From: Salpingoeca rosetta
Lineage: Eukaryota > Protista > Choanoflagellata
Reading direction: 5' to 3'
Assembly (NCBI GenBank): GCA_033442325.1
Contig: JAWQFM010000004.1
Span: 1,424,999-1,451,918, forward strand
DNA length: 26,920 bases
The translations under genes and the position numbers were made by a program. Shown one piece after another: positions 7,649-26,920 of this stretch; within the stretch, counting starts at the first letter, position 1, and each line of letters starts with the position of its first letter. The notes below the pieces were generated by a model. The model was not told where the DNA came from, searched no databases, and worked only from the letters and a program-made list of their open reading frames with translations.

Positions 7649-8460
7649 TCCCGCAAGCCCCAGACATACATCCATCCAGACATCCAGACATCCAGACATC
7701 CATCCGTCGGTCCCACCAGGCACCTTCTGTGCTTTGTCTCCCCCTATTCCCATCGCTTGTACCTGATGTTGGCTGTCGTCTTGCACCAGCATCAGCCCCC
7801 GCCCAACCAGCCAACCCAAGCCCCCATCTCTGCTACTCCACAGTTCGCCCCTCCCCCTCCCCAGCACTCACCGCGTCGCGTCTGTGCTGGGTGATGCCTG
7901 GCCGCTCACATGTGCTGCTGCCATTTGTGGTTACACACTCCATTGCACGCGCATCGTGAGCACGTGCGCACGCTTCCTGTTTCCTTTCTCGCGTTGAGTC
8001 TCTCATCCCCCTCTTTCTACCTCAACACGTTCCTAGGCTTTGCTCTGTTGTTGTGTGTTGTTGGTTTGTTGTCGTTGTTGTACGTCTTTTTGGTTGATTA
8101 TGTGTTTGTTGTGCGGGTCCACCTCAAACACTCCACGCGCACACACACACACACGCACACCCCGCACTCTTCCTATCAAGCGCCAATCCCCCGTATGCCA
8201 CCTTGCGTTGAACAGCGCGCGTGTGGTGCGTCGCATGTCTTCCTTTGTTGTTGTCACAGCTCAATATCAAACTTTGGTTCATTACAGTCACAACGAACGA
8301 GTTTCGAACGAGCATGAACTCATCATCATCATCATCATCATCAGCATCATCATCATCACTGCTGTCAGCATCGCAACCAATCAGTCAATCATTCAAACCA
8401 TAGCTTTAGACAGAACAAGAAATCACCACCACCACCACCACCACCACTACACGCGTGGCG

Positions 8461-8563
8461 TCACTGCACCGTGTGCTTCTCCTTGATCACCACACCGCCA
8501 ACAACCTTGTGCACATAACACACGTCCTTGCCTTCATCGTTGGGCAAATCAGGCACAAGCTCC

Positions 8564-8633
<70 letters not shown>

Positions 8634-9366
8634 TGTATGGTGTGTGTGTGTGTGTGTGCGACTTATGATGAGCGGTCAAGCGAAAAGGAGAAGGAGAGAG
8701 CAACAGCCCTCCTTGAAAGCCCAACACACCAACCACCAGTAGCAGGCCAGGGTGCTGACCTGCTGCTTGCTCGTCTCCGGGCGCCTGACAGATCCGCGAC
8801 GGGACCGTATCTCGCGGATGCTGTCGCCGCCGTCCTCATATCGTGCATTGGCGGCAACGCTGATGGAAAGATGACACGAGGGATGGAAAGATGACACGAG
8901 GGATGGAAAGATGACACGAGGGATGGAAAGATGACACGAGGGATGGAGACAGACAGAGGTCACATGAGCTCCAGTGGTGAAGACTTGGTGGTGGCAGCAC
9001 GCAGATGGATCTGCCATCGAGCACATTAACAGGAACAGGGTGGCGGGGATTCAAAAAAAAAAAAACGTACTTTGCGCACATGGTGATCCAGCGCTCAGCC
9101 TCCTCGACAGAATCGCAATACATGAAATAGGTGCGCCCAGACCGCGTCACGAGTGCAAACCCTTTGCCATGTACAGGAAGGGGGTGGCGGTGGCGCAGTT
9201 TAAGGAGAGGAGGGGAGAGGGTGAGTTGAGAAACAGAGCACGCTTGTGTTGTGTTGTGTTCGTGCATGCGTTGTGTGTGTGTGTGTGTGCGTGTGTTGTG
9301 TGTGTTGTGTTGTGTTGTGTTGTGTTGTGTTGTATTGTGTTGTGTTGTGTTGTGTGCGTGCATGCG

Positions 9367-17592: not shown

Positions 17593-19161
17593 CTAGCTGA
17601 CAGGTGTGGGGATGGGCACGGCATGGCCAACTGGCTTGGGTGCTCTCGCAATGGCAGCGGTGGCGGCGCCAAGGGTGGCAGTCACCGCAGGCGTGGTGGC
17701 GGCGGATGGCGCAACAGCAAATCCGGCGGCAAGTGGCAAGGCCGCAGGCACGTGCGCGATGCCGTCCGCGGCGGGGACGCGTTGCAGGTCAACAAGGACA
17801 TGGCTGAAGGTGTACACGTGCTTGGTGAGCGCAAAGCCGTTGAACGTGCTGGCAGCGCACGAGGTGTACGCGCCCATGTTGTCAAAGACAAGCCAGTCGC
17901 CCACATCCAGCTCCGGCAGCATCGTCGACGCCTGCACGCAGTCGATGGAGTCGCACGTGGGGCCCCACACGCTGCTCTCGTGCAAAACAGCGGCGGCAAG
18001 GTGCTCGTCGTCCATGGCCGGCACGCCGTTGCCCGTGTACAGCACCTGCGCTTGCACACGCGCGTGGTCGAAGATGATACAGTTGAACGACTGGTACACG
18101 CCGTCATTCACGTAGTACATGAACTTTGGTGGCGGCTCAGTGGCGGGGTGGGGGGTGGCGTTGCTCGCAGGCGTCGTAGGCGTCGCACCCGTCGTTGCCG
18201 TTGGTGTGGTGGCCGTCACATCCACCACGCGGCGCTTGGAAGTGATGCAGACAGCCAGCGAGCTGGCGGACGCAACATAGTACCAGCCCGGCTCAGCAAT
18301 AATGCGGAGACCAGGCACCGCCGAGGGCGGGAAGTGCTCTGCAAAGGCGCTGCGGAGCTCACGCGCAATGTCCTCAAACCGGACTGCGGCCGCTGGCGTC
18401 GCAGCGGGATCATCTCCCGGGAAACCGCCCCCAACATCAAGCAGGTGCGGGCTGAAGCCGAGGGCTGCTGCCTCGTCAAACACAGCGCGCGCGCGTGCAA
18501 CCGCATCGGCAAACGCGCGCGCGTCTGTGGCGCCGCTCCCAACGTGGAAGCTCACCCCTACCACGTCCAGTCCAAGCTGGCGGGCCAGCTGCAGCAGGTG
18601 GCCGGTGACAGCCGGGTCTGCGCCAAACTTGAGGCCGAGGCGGCACGCAGATCGCGAGTCGTCCGCGAGCACGCGAAGCACGAGGGCGGCCCCCGGGTAA
18701 TGCTTGGCAATCTTGAGCAGCTCAAACTCGTTGTCAAAGGTCATCATGCGAACGCCGACCTGCTTCGCAAAGCGCAGGTGAGCGATGGCCTTGCACGGGT
18801 TGGCAAAGATGACGCGGTCGGAGCTAACACCAAGGTTGAGGATGGCCTGGATCTCGCCCAGCGACGCGCAGTCAAAGTTGGCCCCCAAGGCCGCCAGCGT
18901 GCCCAAGATGGCGGGATCACTGTTGCACTTGACCGCATAGAACGGCTCCACCATCGGCAGGTGTGCCTGCCACCGCTTGTGCTTGCGGCACACGTCGCCA
19001 AGGTCTGTCAGGAAAAACGCCTCTTCCTCCGTTGTACCGCTCACAATAACGTCCGCCATGGCAGCATGCCGGCTCGCTGCATCGGGGCCGCTCACGTTCA
19101 CAGTCAAGGGCGCAGCAATCGCGCCGCTGGCGTTGGCGTTGTGGGCGCTGGTGCTGTCCAT
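17593..19161 (-). CDS. ODC1: Ornithine decarboxylase family protein (fold type III PLP enzyme), single exon
   Basis: 522-aa ORF with PFYAVKCN (PLP Lys), FDCAS, FANPCK, KFGA, GVSFHVGSG, LDVGGGFPG, EPG, YVNDGVY, WGPTCDSID and NMGAYT..STFNGF. Confidence 0.93.
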   Translation of the reverse strand: MDSTSAHNANASGAIAAPLTVNVSGPDAASRHAAMADVIVSGTTEEEAFFLTDLGDVCRKHKRWQAHLPMVEPFYAVKCNSDPAILGTLAALGANFDCASLGEIQAILNLGVSSDRVIFANPCKAIAHLRFAKQVGVRMMTFDNEFELLKIAKHYPGAALVLRVLADDSRSACRLGLKFGADPAVTGHLLQLARQLGLDVVGVSFHVGSGATDARAFADAVARARAVFDEAAALGFSPHLLDVGGGFPGDDPAATPAAAVRFEDIARELRSAFAEHFPPSAVPGLRIIAEPGWYYVASASSLAVCITSKRRVVDVTATTPTATTGATPTTPASNATPHPATEPPPKFMYYVNDGVYQSFNCIIFDHARVQAQVLYTGNGVPAMDDEHLAAAVLHESSVWGPTCDSIDCVQASTMLPELDVGDWLVFDNMGAYTSCAASTFNGFALTKHVYTFSHVLVDLQRVPAADGIAHVPAALPLAAGFAVAPSAATTPAVTATLGAATAAIARAPKPVGHAVPIPTPVS

Positions 19162-19581: not shown

Positions 19582-19905
19582 TGGTGTCACGGCGGCTGGG
19601 ATTGCGTTGTTTGATGGGGTGGTTGCGGAAACAGAGGCAGCGAATGTTTTGCGACATGTTGTTTGGCAACATTGTCCTATATTTAGTGTATTGGCCTAAC
19701 TATGTAATCAGTTTTGTGTTGTGAGAATCAAAACGACCATGAGCCCGCGCAGATGTCTTGTATTCTTTGCTGTTCTTGTTTGACATCATTCTTGCGCCCC
19801 TCGCCGTGTGCACGATATTGCTACAGGACCACATACCCCATCATGACTCCCACGCGCTCACCGTCATTGGTATGAGCATGACGTCATGAGCACGCGGGCT
19901 ATGAC

Positions 19906-19995
19906 TGTTGCAAGTTCATGGTGGTGGTGCTGTTGTTGGAGACTTGTGTGTGTGTGCTGCGTGTGCAGTGTGTGCAGTGTGTTGTGTGGGAGATT
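19906..19995 (-). mobile_element. Truncated LTR terminus, same family as LTR 23965-24301
   Basis: TGTTGCAAGTTCATGGTGGTGGTGCTGTTGTTGGAGACTTGTGTG..TGTGTTGTGTGGGAGATT is a near copy of 23965-24061. Confidence 0.85.
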
Positions 19996-20695
19996 ACCAG
20001 ACGTCAGCTTCGCGTGCGGACTGCTCTGCCGTTACATGGACCGTTACACGACGGTCCACTGGCAGGCAGCCAAGCACGTCGTGCGGTACCTGAAGGCGAC
20101 GAGCGAGCACGGCCTCCTCTTCAAGCGACGCAGCGGCACGCGCAAGGACCAGCCGCTGGACCTTGTGTGCTACAGCGATGCCAGCTTCGGCACAGACCAG
20201 CTGACGGGCCGCTCCACGACGGGCTTCACCTGCTACATCAACGGCTGTCTTGTGTCTTGGAGCAGCCGGCTGCAACCCACGGTTGCGCTGAGCACCGCCG
20301 AGGCCGAGTACATGGCCATCTCCGCTGCAGCGCAGGACGTCGTCTTCCTGCGGCAGCTGCTCATGGACCTCGGCGAGCCCGAGGCTGGAGCCACCAAGAT
20401 GCTGACAGATAACCAGGCGGCCATCGCCATCGGCAACGACCACGTCACCAAGCCGCGCACGAAGCACATCCGGGTACGCCACCACTTCGTGCGGGAGCTC
20501 ATCGCCGACGGAACCATTGTGCTGCAGCACTGTCCCGGCACGCGGATGGTTGCCGACGCGCTGACCAAGGCACTGGACAAGCAGACCTTCGAGCAGCACC
20601 TGCCACGACTGGTGGGAACCTCGACGGCTGAGACGGAGCAGAGAAGGCAGTTGAGGGGGAGTGTTGAGAGTGAGTGCGTTTCTGTTTTGTGTTGA
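19996..20695 (+). mobile_element. Ty1/copia pol 3' fragment (end of RT plus RNase H)
   Basis: PDVSFACGLLCRYM, HWQAAKHVVRYLK, YSDAS, SWSSRLQPTVALSTAEAEY, TDNQAA, RTKHIRVRHHFVRE, MVADALTK, ending LRGSVE across the PPT/LTR junction. 5'-truncated. Confidence 0.93.
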
Positions 20696-21195
20696 GTCCT
20701 TCCTAATTTGCCTTGTCGTGTGGTTTCGTCTTGTTTGCCAACAACACCTGCTTTGTGGTTTTCTCAGTTGGCAAACATTCCTTCCGCTCTGCTGGCATGT
20801 GTGCCAACTGCCTCTCCTCTCCTCCTTCCCCTACACACGTGAGTTGTGTGCCATGTGTGTGTGTGTGTGCATGCTCGCCATGCTTGGCAAATGCCATGCC
20901 TGCGTGCCATGCAGTGTTGTGAAGTGTTGTCTGTTGTGTATGCTTGCCTGCAAGCATTCATGCCATGTTTAGCATTGCTCTGCGCGCATGTATGCATGCT
21001 GTTCGTTGTTTAGATTGCTTGTGTTCGTGCACACTCTGCCCATGTCGCCTTGGCAGCGTTGTGAACTGTGTGTGCACTTGTCTAGTGTTTGTTTGAGTGT
21101 GCTGCCCGAGTTGATTTGGCAGCAGCTTGTTGTGCTTGTTCATTCTCCTTGTGTTCTTGTTTGTTGCGTTTGCCTACAGTAAACACACACACCAC
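20653..21195 (+). mobile_element. Polypurine tract plus 3' LTR of the + strand copia
   Basis: PPT GAGGGGGAG at 20653-20661 is followed directly by TGTTGAGAG at 20662. The right end is unresolved (no clean CAACA seen), so the end coordinate is approximate. Confidence 0.65.
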
Positions 21196-21992
21196 CTGTC
21201 GTGTTTCTACAATCAGGTACAGCGCTGGGTCGTTGTCGCGGTCGTTCCGTGTTGTTTCTGATGCTGTTCGGAGGATGACGCCGCCTGCCAGTTCCTTGTC
21301 TGTGTTCTTGTGCTCCATGGGCGCTGGGTTGCGCAGTGGTTGTCGTGGGTTGGTGGGGTCTGTTAGGTGAACTTGATCGTTGACGTGGTCAACGCGTGCT
21401 GCATAGTCCTTGAGGAAAGGTCTGCCCAACACGGCGTCGACTCCCCCAATTGGAATCACGAGGAAGTCCCGCGTCGTCGTCAGGCCTTGCACATTGAGGG
21501 TAGCCGTTGTCATGCTCGATCTGGAGACGTGGGATCCGTCTCCGTACGTGACCTGTGTGTCTTGGTGTACCTGTATCACCCTAAGGTTTTTCAAGGCAAA
21601 CTCCTCGGCCACCACGTCGGTTGTGCACCCCGAGTCCAACAGGATGTTGCATGGGGCACCGTTGATCGTTGCACGAAAACGTAGTTGGGGAACGTAGGCC
21701 GGGGTTGATGCTGTGGTAACCGCGCTGAGGTAGTTGGTCGGTGGCTGGCTTCTTGTTGTGGGTGCGTTGCGAACGGTGAGGGTGATAGCGGAGTACTCCT
21801 GGCCGTCCTCCCCATCGCTGTCTCCGTTCCGGCGCCCTGGTCGTGCAGCGCCCGCGCGGCGGGAGGTCTGCTCCTTGCGGAGGCTCGGTGGGGGCTGTCT
21901 CGTCATGGCCAGCTGTAGTGGAGCACTGCTATTGTGGCAGTATTCCACCACAGGATTCGATGCGGGTTGGTTTAATCCGACGTCATCGATGA

Positions 21993-22274
21993 TGTCAAGA
22001 CCTTTAATAGATTAGCATGCATATCTTGCACTGACTTTCTCCTGCTTTGTCTTCCTCTTCTTGACTCCTGATCGTTACACCCTTCTTGCATGCTCCCTCT
22101 GACCTATCTGGCCCCACCTGCTCCGCTGCCACCTGTCACTTCTTCCTTCTCTTTTCTATCTCCTCTTGCCTTGCAAGTTCACCTACCAATACACCATCAC
22201 CCCATATCGAGATCGATCGTACACGCACACCCAGCTACACACTACACACACACTCCTCGTACTACTCTACAACA
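21993..22274 (+). mobile_element. Solo LTR-like insertion (282 bp, TG..CA) inside gypsy pol
   Basis: Ends are TGTCAAG..TACAACA. It shares the GCCACsTGkCACTTCT motif and the pyrimidine-then-CA-rich layout with LTR 23965-24301. Removing it restores the pol frame. Confidence 0.7.
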
Positions 22275-22933
22275 CCAGCAGTGGGTTGTCTTGCCACGCT
22301 CGCAAGTACGCCTTTTGCGCGAGGCGGCTGGATCGTCGAGGCTTCCGCACGGTTGTCGGTGGTGGCCTCCACGAGACACTGGAGGGAAACGGTAACTGTG
22401 GGTCGGTGACGTTGTGCGGATCTGCTCCCGCGCTTGTTGCTATGGTGGGCGTCGTCGCTGTGTCTGCGTTTGTGTGTCTGTGGGCGTGTAGGTCTCTGCA
22501 CGCTGTAGCTGTGTCCGTGACTGTGTGTGCGGTTGTGTCTGTATGTGCACCTGTGTCTGTGTCTGTGTCCGTGTCTGTGTCTGTGTCTGCGTTTGTTTGC
22601 GCATCTGGGTTTGCCACCGTGGCTAATGCTGTGTGTGCTGCGGCAGTGGCTGGGTCCATGGTTGCTGAGTCCGACGACTCTGCCGCTGAGTCTGTGTCCG
22701 TGTGCGCGTGTAGATCTCTGCACGCTGTAGCTGTGTCTGTGTCCGTGTGTGCGTGTAGATCTCTGCACGCTATAGCTGTGTCTGTGTCTGTGTCCGTGTG
22801 CGCGTGTAGATCTCTGCACGCTGTGTCTGTGTGTGTGTCTGTGTGTGTGTCTGTGTGTGTGTCTGTGTGTGTGTCTGTGTGTGTGTGTGTCTGGGGTTGT
22901 CGTTGTGACGGGTGGCGGCTCGCGTGGGATGGT

Positions 22934-22981
22934 CCGCTTCAGGAGGGTCACGCGCCCCCTCACTGAAGCGGGCCGTTTCCC
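22934..22981 (-). promoter_or_regulatory. -1 programmed ribosomal frameshift signal (G GGA AAC plus stem-loop)
   Basis: Slippery heptamer at 22981-22975 in the correct phase in gag (CCG GGA AAC). The hairpin CCGCTTCAG-T-GAGGG-loop-CCCTC-CTGAAGCGG follows, and the -1 frame is open downstream. Confidence 0.8.
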
Positions 22982-23664
22982 GGGCACTGAGCATAGCCGT
23001 GGCCGGGTTTGCGGCAACGGAAGCAGGCGCCCTCGGCCATCAGTCGCTGGCGCTCCTCTGGTGTCAGTGGTGGCAGGCGCTTGCGTGGTCCTTCATCACG
23101 TCGCGGGGCCTGCTTGCTTGCCTGGTACTTGGAGGTGCTGTTTGAAGAGACTGACGTGTGGCGCGCGAAGTGGGTCCCGGATGCATCCTTGGCTCGGTCC
23201 GCGTCCTCGGCGATCTTCATTGCTTGAACCAGCGTCGACGGGCTGGCCACCGATACCACTTGTCGAATCGTCGGGTGGAGTCCTATCAGGTAGAAGGCCA
23301 GCAGGAAGACCTCGCTCCGCTCCGACAGTTGGTCCGCCACGCGGTTGAAGTCTCCGTTGTAGGCTTGAACGTCCTTGGTTTGCCTGATGGCGCGGAGCTC
23401 GAAGACCAGCTGTAGCTGTCGGGATGGGTTGTGGAAGCGGTCGACGATCTTGTCCACGAGGTCGTCCGCCTTGACTGCGGAGTCACTCATGAACTCCTTG
23501 GCGAAGGACTTGGCTCTCCCGTCGAGTTGCAGGTAGAGATGGAGCTTCACTTGGCGGGCGTCCATTGTCGCGGAGGCGACCTCCAGCAGGAGCTTGGTAT
23601 CGTCGGCCCAGTCATGGACGTCCTCGGTCTTCGATCCCGAGAACTTGCGAAAAACGAAGTCCAT
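22960..23664 (-). CDS. gag: Ty3/gypsy Gag
   Basis: MDFVFRKFSGSKTEDVHDW..LDGRAKSF..LRAIRQTKDVQAYNGDF..YLIGLHPTIR, and the C-terminal zinc knuckle CFRCRKPGHGYAQC (CX2CX4HX4C). Confidence 0.92.
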   Translation of the reverse strand: MDFVFRKFSGSKTEDVHDWADDTKLLLEVASATMDARQVKLHLYLQLDGRAKSFAKEFMSDSAVKADDLVDKIVDRFHNPSRQLQLVFELRAIRQTKDVQAYNGDFNRVADQLSERSEVFLLAFYLIGLHPTIRQVVSVASPSTLVQAMKIAEDADRAKDASGTHFARHTSVSSNSTSKYQASKQAPRRDEGPRKRLPPLTPEERQRLMAEGACFRCRKPGHGYAQCPGNGPLQ

Positions 23665-23964
23665 CTTGTCGTGTGTCGAGAGGCGCGGCTGAGCGAGAAT
23701 TGCTAGGTTTGGCTGGGGTGGGTAAGCGGTGTGTTGTGGTTTGCAAAGGTAGGGTCTCAATCACTCAATGGTCGGTGGACTTTGTGCAATCGCTACCATG
23801 TAAGGTCATGGGCTGTGTACTGGGGTCGTTGTCGAAGACAAACAGTAAAACAAAAGAATGAACAAGACGAACGTGACACTCGCACAAAAGGGCATGAGCG
23901 AGTGCACAGAAAGAACAAGCAGGGAGAAACACGAATACGAGAGCAGAAGCCGTAGGGGCTTTAG

Positions 23965-24003
23965 TGTTGTAAGTTCATGGTGATGGTGCTGTTGTTGGAG
24001 ACT

Positions 24004-24034
<31 letters not shown>

Positions 24035-24310
24035 AGTGTGCTGTGTGTTGTGTGGGAGATTGTCTTGGCAAGGGGAAGTTGTGTGTGTTTACTTGAGTTG
24101 TGAAGCAAACAAGGATGTAGGATGAATGAACATGAACTGAGAGACACTCTCACACATAGACAGAAAACTGGAGGAGAGAGAGAGAAGTGCCACGTGGCAA
24201 AACAACCAGAAACGCCCGTTTCTGGGCGCACGTGCACAGAAACGTTTACAGCAGAATTTGCTGACTCAGCAAGCATTGACACTGGAACAGTGATGTCAAC
24301 ACTCCCCCGC
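23965..24310 (-). mobile_element. 3' LTR (337 bp) and PPT of a minus-strand copia element
   Basis: On the minus strand, PPT GCGGGGGAG (24310-24302) is followed by TGTTGACA..TACAACA (24301-23965), with TGTTG/CAACA inverted termini. Confidence 0.88.
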
Positions 24311-24444
24311 AGTGGCGTGCTTGCTGGTGTCGAGTCCCTCCAGTGAAGAGCTGCTGTGTGCAGTACCCGTGAAGTCCTCCATCAGTGACCTGTGGTGACT
24401 TGCAGTGACATGCTCGATTCAAATGTTTGGCGGCACAAAATCGT

Positions 24445-24583
24445 NNNNNNNNNNNNNNNNNNNNNNNNNNNNNNNNNNNNNNNNNNNNNNNNNNNNNNNN
24501 NNNNNNNNNNNNNNNNNNNNNNNNNNNNNNNNNNNNNNNNNNNNNNNNNNNNNNNNNNNNNNNNNNNNNNNNNNNNNNNNNNN
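24445..24583. other. Assembly gap
   Basis: N run between the copia PPT and the Josephin ORF. Confidence 0.98.
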
Positions 24584-24678
24584 NTCGCAGAACAGTCGCT
24601 GAGTTGTGCGATGTTCACCTCAACCGCAGATGAGCATCCCCAAGAAAACCCCGTTTAAGCGGCCATCCTCACAGGGGG

Positions 24679-25158
24679 ATGTCCTGGGCAGGTGATGGGT
24701 TAGTTCAGAAGCAAGTAAGCACTCGATGCGCATTGCATGCTGTGAACAACCTGCTTTCGGGCGTGGTTGCTTCGCCTGCCTCGTTTGAGAAAATCCGTCT
24801 GCGGTATTGTCGCCAGTACCGCCGGAACGGTTGGTCGCTCGCTGGCTTGGGCAAGCCGAAGAGAGCACCAGGGAATTGGTCACTCAACATCCCGCTGGAG
24901 TGGCTCAGTACCAACTCGTACACGGTGACAGCTGTGCGTGGGCGCCGACCTCGTCGTACCGTGTTCAAGCTTGGGCGACAGCGACAGATGTTGCTCCTTG
25001 TTGTGCATCCCCCTGAGAACTTAGACATGCGCCATGTGATATGCATTCGTGACAACATGATCTTAGACAGTTACCGTGGCGTTGCACCCCTTGATGATCT
25101 GCATTGGTCTGAGTGTGTGGGAACTCTCGAGTCAGCATATCGAGTAAAGCGTCGTTGA
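24679..25158 (+). CDS. Josephin-domain (MJD family) cysteine protease, putative deubiquitinase, antisense within the copia 3' region
   Basis: 159-aa intronless ORF: QKQVSTRCALHAVNNLLSG (compare ataxin-3 HEKQEGSLCAQHCLNNLLQG), GNWS, RHVICIR and ILDS. Predicted Gln12, Cys17, His119 and Asp130. Confidence 0.8.
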   Translation: MSWAGDGLVQKQVSTRCALHAVNNLLSGVVASPASFEKIRLRYCRQYRRNGWSLAGLGKPKRAPGNWSLNIPLEWLSTNSYTVTAVRGRRPRRTVFKLGRQRQMLLLVVHPPENLDMRHVICIRDNMILDSYRGVAPLDDLHWSECVGTLESAYRVKRR

Positions 25159-25430
25159 ACGTGAACAGAAGTCTCAAAGAAATGTAGTGTGTATTGTGGT
25201 GAGGACGTTGGTTGGGGCGCGCTCATGGTAGGAAGTGACTTGGTGCGTGCGTGTTGAGGAAGGCACAGTGTAGGAGAAGTATTGCATGAATGAGGCGCTC
25301 GTGGAAAGAGTCGCAGAAGAGGATCATCTATGGTGCCTGTGGTGCCCGGTCAGCGCAGAGAACCGGCCCGTGGAAGGCGTGCCTGTGGTCCTCGCTGATC
25401 AGAGGCCCTATGACGGACAGGAAGGGCGTG

Positions 25431-26920
25431 TCAGACGAGGCCTGGTGTAAGGCACATGGCCTGTGGTGCCTGTGAACCGTCAGGGGCTGCCACGTCGTTG
25501 GTGAATGCAGCGTGAGCGGCGACCCGTGTGAGACCAGATGATGTGGATGCTTTCTTGCTGCCTGTTGCAAGGCAGAAGAGGCGTGCGCTGAATTGAGCCG
25601 TCTTGGGCCGAGGGAGGATCTTCGTGAGAAGATCTGCGATCATATGCTCCGTGGCGAGGTAGCTCAGCACAATCCTCTTTGTGTCGACGCACTCGCGGAT
25701 GTAGTGGTACTTGACGAGGATGTGCCGCATGCGCGAGGCGGCGTGTTCGGCAACGCGCTGCGCCGGCTGGTTGTCCGTGTGCACGAGCGTGGGCTCGCAC
25801 AGGACGGCGCCGGTGAGCTCCTCCTGGAGTTGGCGAAGGAACATGAGTTCCTGTGCGGTGGCTGCGAGAGCCATGTACTCCGCGTCGGCGGAGGCTGTGG
25901 CCACGGTGGCCTGCAGCTTGGAGTTCCAGGACACGGGGCCCGTGGAACAGAAGACGACGAAGCCCGTGCGGGAACGTCGCGTGTCAACGTCGGAGGCGAA
26001 CGACGCATCCGAGTACGCTGAGAGCACGCCGTCGGCAGTGCTGCCGTTGCTGGTGTCGCCAGTGGCGGCGTACTTGATGGTGTAGGACAAGGTGCCCTTG
26101 ATGTAGCGAAGAAGGTGCTTGGCAGCCTTCCAATGGTCCATGCCGAAGTGCTGCATACGGCGAGAGAGGATGGAGACAGCCGCCGAGATGTCTGGGCGCG
26201 TCATCGTCGCAGCATAGAGGAGGGAGCCAAGCAGCTCGCGGAACGGCACATCCGGGAGTGGCTCCTCCTTGTCGGCTGGCTTGTCGACGTAGCCCGTGCA
26301 GAGCGGCGTGCCGACCGGCTTGCAGTCAGCCATGCCGAAGGTCTCCAGCACGCTGCGCAGGTAGTGCTCCTGGCTCATGGTGACGGTCCTGGCCTTGCGG
26401 TCGTGCTGCACCTTGATGCCGAGACAAATGTCTGGGCTGCCCAGGTCCTTCATCTTGAAGCGCTTGGAGATGGCCTTCTTGAACGCGGCCATGTCGCTGT
26501 CGCTGTCGGCGAAGATGAGCAGGTCGTCCACGTAGACGGCAACCCACATCACCTTGCCACCCTTGCAGGTGCGGCGGTAGATGCAGGCGTCCGTGGCTGT
26601 GGCGATGAAGTCCTGCTCGCGCATCCAGGCGTCCAGCGTGTGGTTCCACAGGCGCGGGCTCTGCTTCAGGCCATACAACCCGCGCTTGAGGCGCAGGACC
26701 GTATTCGGCGAGAAGATGCCGTCGACGGCCGGTGGCTGGACGTAGATCTCGTGATCCACGGGCGCGTTGAGGAACGCCGTGTTGACGTCCATCTGCTGGA
26801 TGTCCATGCCACGCGCGACGGCCATGGCGAGCATGGTGCGGATGGCTGCGATGGTAGCCGTCGGGGCAAAGGTGTCCGTGTAGTTGACACCGTGGACCTG
26901 GGAGTAGCCTTTGGCAACCC
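25431..26920 (-). mobile_element. pol: Ty1/copia pol (RT and RNase H), uninterrupted, continues beyond window
   Basis: VAKGYSQVHGVNYTDTFAP, QMDVNTAFLN, LYGLKQSPRLW, YVDD, FKMKDLG, RPDIS, YSDAS, AEY, TDNQ and MIADLLTK. Confidence 0.97.

Follow-up and report, generated by a model that had tools for sequence, protein, structure and literature searches.

A predicted Josephin-fold cysteine protease gene lies antisense to gag-pol in a subfamily of the Srospv3 copia retrotransposon of Salpingoeca rosetta

The window analysed here is a stretch of 26,920 nucleotides from the choanoflagellate Salpingoeca rosetta (GenBank assembly GCA_033442325.1, contig JAWQFM010000004.1, positions 1,424,999 to 1,451,918 of the forward strand), whose end holds the 3' part of a Ty1/copia retrotransposon with long terminal repeats (LTRs) and, within it, a small gene which is read against gag-pol. 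This gene, at 24679-25158 on the plus strand, is an intact and intronless open reading frame (ORF) of 159 aa (175 aa in the copies on C17 and C23), situated behind the pol stop, ahead of the PPT and 3' LTR, and inside the LTR pair, and the frame itself, its family profile, its structure model and its ratio of nonsynonymous to synonymous substitution rates (dN/dS) mark it as a Josephin-like cysteine protease gene. It carries the motifs Q12-x4-C17ALHAVNNLL, G65NWS (65-68), H119VICIR (119-124) and L129DS (129-131), just as an initial annotation of the window had described them. The element lies on the minus strand and runs from 23965 to about 6.4 kb further on. Its 3' LTR (23965-24301, minus strand, TGTTG...CAACA), which was delimited by its identity to the 5' LTR and by the starts of paralogous copies, holds a (CA)n run and the poly(A) site of the genomic RNA at about 24078, and is adjoined by a polypurine tract (PPT) read from the sequence as GGGGGAG (about 24302-24312, minus strand). 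The part of pol that encodes reverse transcriptase (RT) and RNase H occupies 25431-26920 on the minus strand as an ORF of 467 aa (RVT_2, E 6e-41) with its stop at 25431, and its frame is stop-free over 495 codons to the window end, beyond which the element continues to the 5' LTR. Self-comparison of the window and the next 18 kb placed this 5' LTR at C4:1455062-1455396, past the window end, with 99.4 % identity to the 3' LTR over 337 nt; the two LTRs are 6.1 kb apart and enclose both pol and the ORF. Going inward from the 5' LTR we found a primer-binding site (PBS) complementary to the tRNA-Met anticodon loop and then the gag start. The 3' LTR therefore belongs to the same copia element, and pol, the extra DNA behind it and both LTRs form one unit, in which the Ty1/copia traits (an LTR pair, a tRNA-Met-type PBS, a PPT and a gag-pol with copia-type RT) are all present.

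A run of N (24445-24584, plus strand) lies upstream of the ORF, 94 nt before its ATG, and leaves the ORF itself uninterrupted. Four paralogues, on C17, C23, C25 and C12, start exactly at the equivalent of 23965, are colinear on either side of the gap (two of them onward into pol) and fill it with AT-rich DNA of 140 nt (157 nt in C23), and the length of the N run in the window copy is exactly that of the paralogue spacer. RNA reads and contigs placed on the C17 copy also spanned the gap region without joints. Thus the extra DNA is indeed part of the copia element, as initially annotated, and the doubt raised along with that claim, namely that closing the gap could assign the LTR to a different element, was settled by the paralogues which read across it. 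An adjoining Ty3 gag (22960-23760) was considered as the owner of this LTR and rejected, as the copia LTR, PBS and gag start lie 6.1 kb upstream.

The relationship of the ORF to the Josephins was examined at the sequence level in several ways. An exhaustive search of 1.8 billion representatives returned six proteins at E 1e-10 or better, with 31-62 % identity, and tied the ORF at E 8.6e-11 to P0010, a transcript-derived EukProt protein of the family. P0010 scored 26.1 bits (E 8.7e-6) against the Pfam Josephin model (PF02099), which is at the cut-off of 26 bits, and the relatives scored 17.4-18.3 bits. A word-indexed search from P0010 gave no match except P0010 itself, a scan of viral contigs gave no relative of the ORF, and a scan of metagenomes gained only three short loci. 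In an alignment of 12 sequences reaching down to 26 % identity, 12 columns were invariant and these included Q12, C17, H119 and D130. When the profile made from these 12 sequences was compared with all sequences of the PDB, JOSD2 came first at E 1.3e-5, followed by ATXN3/ATXN3L in the range E 0.003-0.02, with ATXN3 itself at 2.6e-3; the top five matches were all Josephins and the next match followed at E 0.9; the Gln and Cys of the catalytic helix of JOSD2 and ATXN3 aligned with Q12 and C17 of the ORF. The same profile matched a Josephin-like exon of the host on C35 at E 1.6e-7, and this exon by itself matches the start of Pfam Josephin. The host Josephin-like gene (C35:230381-230530; L029/L047) has a first exon containing DLYFETQRRQQCALHATNNFLQ, which is followed by a (TG)n-rich intron, and no further exons were found with the hidden Markov model of the family within 1.6 kb downstream.

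Structure prediction gave a similar picture. The AlphaFold2 model made from the 12-sequence alignment had a pLDDT of 86.5 and a pTM of 0.80, while an earlier run with six close homologues had given a pLDDT of 42.7 and was discarded. The top 15 chains found by Foldseek were all Josephins (best E 3.6e-6), and VIA-align placed ATXN3L at Z 13.3 (141 residues, rmsd 3.4, 19 % identity) and JOSD2 at Z 11.6 (24 % identity). In the ESM Atlas the top four clusters consisted to 100 % of PF02099 proteins (TM 0.76-0.69), the best of them being a Josephin-only protein of 194 aa, and language-model features ranked a Josephin cluster second. H119 and D130 stand on adjacent strands of the predicted model, and the model is poor in the arm region (residues about 51-69), which is short. 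Because the profile matches, the structure rankings and the invariant catalytic residues agree, we file the predicted product as a divergent Josephin-fold cysteine protease, which is what the motifs had initially been taken to indicate.

We then asked how the gene is conserved. Between the ORF and its counterparts L016, L018 and L030 we obtained a dN of 0.14-0.18 and a dS of about 1.0-1.3, with dN/dS 0.14-0.15, and in the diverged homologues the frame was open in every one with dN/dS of 0.11-0.28. For pol of the same pairs (last 480 codons) dS was 1.04 and omega 0.25. Gene and pol have thus diverged together, the gene being under at least as strong a constraint, and with at least five copies in the genome and homologues which keep the frame at these ratios it is not a chance frame; what prevails is purifying selection (about 0.14) and no neutral decay. 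Homologues at 75-80 % identity on metagenomic contigs have the same layout as the window element, in that a long copia gag-pol ORF ends on the opposite strand about 220 nt after the ORF. In L016 this copia ORF has 1314 aa with Pol_BBD, rve and RVT_2, the relatives showing the order protease (Pol_BBD), integrase and RT on one ORF, and the pol tails of the relatives are homologous to the pol tail of the window. From these alignments the gene-bearing form is older than the split between the window element and its metagenomic relatives. The initial idea of a captured cargo gene accordingly stands insofar as the gene is a module within the element, while a recent capture does not, since gene and pol tail are shared at a dS of about 1. 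Together with the use of the same slot in chromoviruses, described below, the gene is an old, heritable module. Its third codon positions are also less GC-biased than those of pol, as had been noted by eye, the GC content at third codon positions (GC3) being 0.57 for the ORF, 0.84 for pol and 0.77 for a host gene; since the relative L016 shows the same contrast (0.51 for the ORF and 0.73 for pol), the low GC3 is a stable feature of the module.

Matches of the LTR and of Gag-Pol in the supplements of PMC6875170 identified the element as a subfamily of Srospv3, a copia-like family of S. rosetta with 121 copies and the two subgroups Srospv3A and Srospv3B (Southworth et al. 2019, PMC6875170). The window LTR matches rows of the Srospv3 LTR alignment in supplement 7 of that paper, and 40 of the 126 rows begin alike. 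In the compared stretches the published consensus is identical in Gag-Pol up to ...ILPRPKTAQF and has the same PBS and the same R (repeat) and U5 (5'-unique) parts of the LTR, whereas it differs in being 5680 bp long, with another pol tail of 34 aa, a 3' untranslated region (UTR) of 225 nt and another U3 (3'-unique) part, and it lacks the antisense ORF and with it the Josephin module. The text of PMC6875170 contains neither 'antisense' nor 'additional ORF', the Josephin peptide is absent from its supplements, and a 2025 chromatin paper on transposable elements (TEs) of S. rosetta does not mention the antisense ORF. The published consensus therefore misses the gene-bearing subfamily. What replaces its 3' end is a subfamily-specific 3' module at 24133-25587 (minus strand), delimited by the homology breakpoints of Josephin-less copies, which are homologous only above 25587/25590 and within 23965-24132. 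Read in the direction of the element, this module opens with the C-terminal tail of pol and a spacer, continues with the antisense gene and the AT-rich spacer, and closes with the PPT and U3. Because the gene-bearing form predates the split of related elements, the gene-less Srospv3 form that was published is, on these comparisons, probably the derived one.

The gene is present in at least five copies in the genome, at 96-100 % identity, and a sixth (C8) is masked by N; the U3 type of the window occurs at about 20 places, six of which extend into the internal 3' region, and five of these six show the ORF. These counts are lower bounds, since most of the internal sequence of the other copies is hidden by N runs of kilobase length. 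The ORF is thus carried by other members of the subfamily and is not single-copy, which answers a question that the initial annotation had posed. The window copy has its own peculiarities. Three small indels upstream of the ORF shift the usual start out of frame, giving 159 instead of 175 aa. The ATG from which the other copies are read (MSNPKKTAVKRPSSVG...) thus no longer leads into the main ORF and, as the alignment of copies and their translations showed, opens in the window copy only an upstream ORF of 21 codons (24630-24695, plus strand) which overlaps the main ATG. It also carries Ser where the others have Gly, three residues ahead of the catalytic Cys, with the catalytic domain complete.

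Two of the other copies lie in particular surroundings. At C23:496339-499300 (L007) an inverted Srospv3 pol is followed by an N run and then by the gene-bearing copy, and, provided that the masked part is colinear, no more than about 30 nt would separate the two elements, which would then stand tail to tail. The gene copy on C12 (about 1379760-1380400, L009) breaks at a gap of 100 N, which is followed by telomere-type (CCCTAA)n repeats.

Transcription was followed in three stranded RNA-seq runs of S. rosetta on the gap-free C17 copy (L006:6962-9120), in which the element is on the plus and the ORF on the minus strand. Sense RNA covered the whole of this stretch, with A-tails at 7983 and, in the LTR, at 9075-9078. 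Antisense reads were confined to L006 about 7970-8570, that is to the gene, and they represent a separate polyadenylated mRNA of about 580 nt; stranded RNA-seq was among the checks proposed at the outset. The antisense molecules end at L006 8547, 8565 and 8570, which puts the 5' ends of the mRNA at 24584-24609 of the window (plus strand), and T-runs precede L006 7990, 9 nt past the stop codon; the mRNA thus has a 5' UTR of 21-44 nt, an ORF of 175 aa in the best-preserved copies and a 3' UTR of 9 nt. The poly(A) sites of the two strands converge within 25159-25174 and are 7 nt apart (antisense about 25167, sense about 25174; L006 7990 and 7983). The internal site takes about half of the sense copia RNA, the sense depth being halved just before the antisense gene, and the shorter sense RNA could serve only as mRNA because it is without PPT and R. 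In two runs antisense coverage peaked at 172 and 285, with sense depth at 46 and 31, and in the third it peaked at 13, with sense depth at 200; the antisense to sense ratio thus spanned about 9:1 to about 1:15 among the samples, which shows that the gene is regulated apart from gag-pol. At L006 9020 (about 24135) RNA reads switch to the U3 of the other Srospv3 subfamily, the consensus of the loose ends matching the published LTR at 240-272; both Srospv3 subfamilies are transcribed, and R and U5 are common to both.

The antisense transcript begins where the AT-rich spacer has its inner edge, about 285 nt inward from the LTR boundary. No antisense reads covered the stretch from the 5' ends to the LTR (L006 8618-8833), so the promoter is not in the LTR, and the initial suggestion that the gene is driven by an antisense promoter of the 3' LTR was not supported. 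The AT-rich spacer holds a 17-nt block, GA(A)CCCACAAGTGTGCA, which S. rosetta shares without change with the three diverged elements L016, L019 and L030, and in the C17 copy a weak TATA-like CATAT follows it. We take the AT-rich spacer with this block to be the putative promoter of the antisense gene.

More distant homologues of the ORF (31-44 % identity) were found antisense and 19-85 nt behind ORFs with integrase and chromodomain, that is in chromoviruses, which belong to Ty3/gypsy. In the tree a single clade with support 100/99 unites the copia-borne genes, and it is nested within a grade of genes from chromoviruses. As this tree is midpoint-rooted, with long branches and no outgroup, we claim no direction of transfer. 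The same gene in the same slot of copia elements and chromoviruses points to modular exchange between two LTR superfamilies.

Taken together, these results make it likely, in our judgement, that the Srospv3 subfamily carries a heritable accessory module, namely an antisense Josephin-fold gene with its own promoter, whose product is most likely a deubiquitinase (DUB) that acts in trans and aids retrotransposition. The module would be a compact gene opposite to gag-pol, with its promoter in the AT-rich spacer beside the PPT and its mRNA polyadenylated head-on against the internal poly(A) site of the sense RNA. The product would be a minimal stand-alone Josephin-fold protease of the papain-like type, with the full Gln/Cys/His/Asp set, which may act in trans to remove ubiquitin or a ubiquitin-like modifier (UBL) from element proteins or host factors, and the element would benefit either by stabilisation of Gag, Pol or integrase or by blunting of ubiquitin-dependent host restriction. 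Isopeptidase activity, ubiquitin as the substrate and the benefit to the element are what we infer, action in trans on ubiquitin conjugates being drawn from established Josephin biochemistry. The gene is a real, selected accessory gene and, going by sequence and model, its protein is a probable deubiquitinase. Of the interpretation offered initially, an element-borne, antisense, Josephin-like gene under selection was upheld, while its LTR promoter and its recent capture were not.

Several observations weigh against this interpretation. The ORF alone scores 13.2 bits against Pfam Josephin, over residues 14-40 only and below the 26-bit cut-off, the significant similarity to solved Josephins is confined to about 50 N-terminal residues, and the confident model depends on an alignment of 12 sequences. 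Complex prediction with host ubiquitin, run without the family alignment, gave neither support nor counter-evidence. The RNA evidence comes from one study, and its reads are not assignable to the window copy, which, having an out-of-frame upstream ATG and the Gly to Ser change, may be a weaker allele. There is also no 5-bp target-site duplication, the flanks of the element being TTTAG and GTGAC; both flanks are contiguous in a paralogous repeat except for 21 nt replaced by 25 nt at the 5'-LTR side, which suggests a rearrangement at the junction or recombination between copies, with the internal structure unaffected. Lastly, C39-type and other papain-like peptidases reach Z about 10.8 in VIA-align, about 2.5 below the best Josephin, and the fold alone does not fix the substrate.

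This last point leads to the alternative which survives best, though we regard it as unlikely, that the fold is right and the chemistry another one: the protein could be a clippase cutting ubiquitin destructively before its Gly-Gly, like many bacterial Josephins, could be specific for a UBL, or could have a non-ubiquitin substrate as C39 peptidases do, and these peptidases at Z about 10.8 speak for it. The bacterial Josephins BpJOS, PaJOS and PcJOS, which are clippases, are among the top structural matches, and clippases bind ubiquitin in a shifted register and cleave before Gly75, a mode of cleavage that in the bacterial family cannot be read from sequence (10.1101/2024.07.24.604956). Against this, the best matches in sequence and structure and the highest identities (19-24 %) are with eukaryotic Josephins, which cleave after Gly76, Josephins being ubiquitin isopeptidases (10.1101/2024.07.24.604956), and the profile matches the Josephin-like exon of the host itself. 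Much less probable to us is that the antisense RNA is the selected function, through transcriptional interference or through double-stranded RNA formed with the genomic RNA, and that the protein is secondary. It is true that about 580 nt of the full-length sense RNA are also covered by the antisense mRNA and that the poly(A) site of the latter abuts the internal sense site, that sense and antisense levels are inversely related among the three runs, and that regulatory roles have been proposed for antisense transcripts of LTR elements (PMC7264820). But what is constrained is the protein, with dN/dS of 0.11-0.28 at saturating dS, open frames and catalytic residues invariant down to 26 % identity, and a role of the RNA and a role of the protein are not mutually exclusive. 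That the ORF is a passive or decaying fragment of a host gene, or that the assembly has joined it to the LTR of another element, as the N gap between LTR and ORF, the lack of a target-site duplication, the Ty3/gypsy gag directly beyond the LTR and the many N stretches in other copies could make one think, is already contradicted by four other copies colinear from LTR through gap to ORF (two of them on into pol), by the 5' LTR with PBS and gag start 6.1 kb away, by purifying selection and co-divergence with pol and by a host Josephin-like gene that is intron-bearing and only distantly similar, and we give it next to no weight.

The surroundings of the element contain further transposon sequences. 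At 21085-23760 (minus strand) lies what remains of a Ty3/gypsy element, with gag (Ty3_capsid) and an aspartic protease, and the Srospv3 element sits in LTR-like sequence of this repeat, of which an uninterrupted paralogue lies about 10 kb away, past the window end. The second copia of the window is a 3' fragment of Srospv2 (19886-21213, plus strand) with the RNase H end and an LTR of 552 nt; its pol ORF runs directly into the LTR and ends inside the LTR start. This is the other copia of the initial annotation. A single-exon ornithine decarboxylase gene (17596-19161, minus strand; Orn_Arg_deC_N, E 2e-78) lies 4 kb from the transposon cluster.

Beyond an accessory module of one subfamily with a probable deubiquitinase, a wider reading appears possible to us, and is put forward tentatively. 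In it, promoter, gene and poly(A) site would together form a portable cassette for counter-defence or self-stabilisation, moved between Ty3/chromovirus and Ty1/copia elements of choanoflagellates and other marine protists, always into the slot from pol to the 3' LTR, with the deubiquitinase shielding element proteins or disarming ubiquitin-dependent restriction by the host. If true, an assignable enzymatic function would for the first time be known for an antisense accessory ORF of an LTR retrotransposon, and this ORF would be a retrotransposon counterpart of the DUB effectors of viruses and bacteria. Antisense ORFs behind pol have been known for decades from plant and fungal LTR elements, and here the product is a recognisable enzyme, whereby the role of such an accessory gene becomes directly testable in a genetically tractable relative of animals. 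Genetic parasites with enzymes of the ubiquitin system, so far viruses, bacteria, DNA transposons and non-LTR elements, would thereby come to include LTR retrotransposons. We found no description in the literature of a Josephin gene in an LTR element, and in particular no paper on a stand-alone antisense one, in line with the initial annotation; among the literature matches, mostly from the Arkhipova group, no title or abstract dealt with a Josephin gene in a retroelement. These matches presumably stem from the address 'Josephine Bay Paul Center'.

Compared with known systems, the predicted protein is closest to the eukaryotic Josephins (ATXN3, ATXN3L and JOSD1/JOSD2; PF02099, MEROPS C86), with which it shares the papain-like Josephin fold, the pattern Q-x4-C-[AG]-x-H-x-x-N-N-[LV]-L on the catalytic helix and the His and Asp/Asn on adjacent strands, and in size it is like the stand-alone JOSD proteins. 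It differs from them in having only 19-24 % identity and Asp, not Asn, as the third residue of the triad, and its gene is intronless and retrotransposon-encoded, with a GC3 far below that of host genes. The bacterial BpJOS, PaJOS and PcJOS are likewise Josephins outside cellular eukaryotic genes, match structurally at Z 10-10.8 and serve a genetic parasite or pathogen against the ubiquitin system of its host (10.1101/2024.07.24.604956), whereas they are larger, with extra elements, and only 12-16 % identical to the ORF product.

Retroelements with comparable proteases differ in the way these are encoded. In Dualen, the Josephin-related cysteine protease (JCP) lies inside the sense-strand polyprotein. 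The occurrence of a Josephin-like domain in Dualen, stated in the initial annotation, agrees with a figure of Chlamydomonas TEs in which a JCP domain is labelled, and as far as its legend goes (PMC9977147) this is likewise a retroelement-borne Josephin-type protease, reading there as a domain of a TE protein, unlike the separate antisense gene with its own mRNA found here. The NeSL and Utopia non-LTR elements carry Ulp1-like cysteine proteases (PMC4640811) and are thus retroelements with a ubiquitin/UBL-type cysteine protease too, but of another protease clan and as a sense fusion. HBZ of HTLV-1, as cited in PMC7264820, is a protein-coding antisense gene near the 3' end of a retroelement, but it encodes a transcription factor and is driven from the 3' LTR, unlike the ORF here.

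The nearest counterpart in arrangement is the aORF-3R type of antisense ORF of plant Ty3/gypsy elements (maize Grande gene23, rice RIRE2, Silene Retand) and of fungal Boty, which occupies the same slot in the same orientation (PMC7264820). Such ORFs are present in the copies of a family and conserved like the element proteins, and the ORF described here likewise has this slot and strand, is present and conserved in the copies (dN/dS 0.14 against 0.25 for pol) and has its own antisense transcript. In Grande, too, the promoter is upstream of the antisense ORF and not in the LTR (PMC7264820). The products of the plant and fungal ORFs have no clear similarity to known proteins (2020 review, PMC7264820), whereas the gene of the Srospv3 subfamily differs from them in its recognisable, predicted enzymatic fold, its choanoflagellate host, its Ty1/copia carrier and its relatives in chromoviruses.

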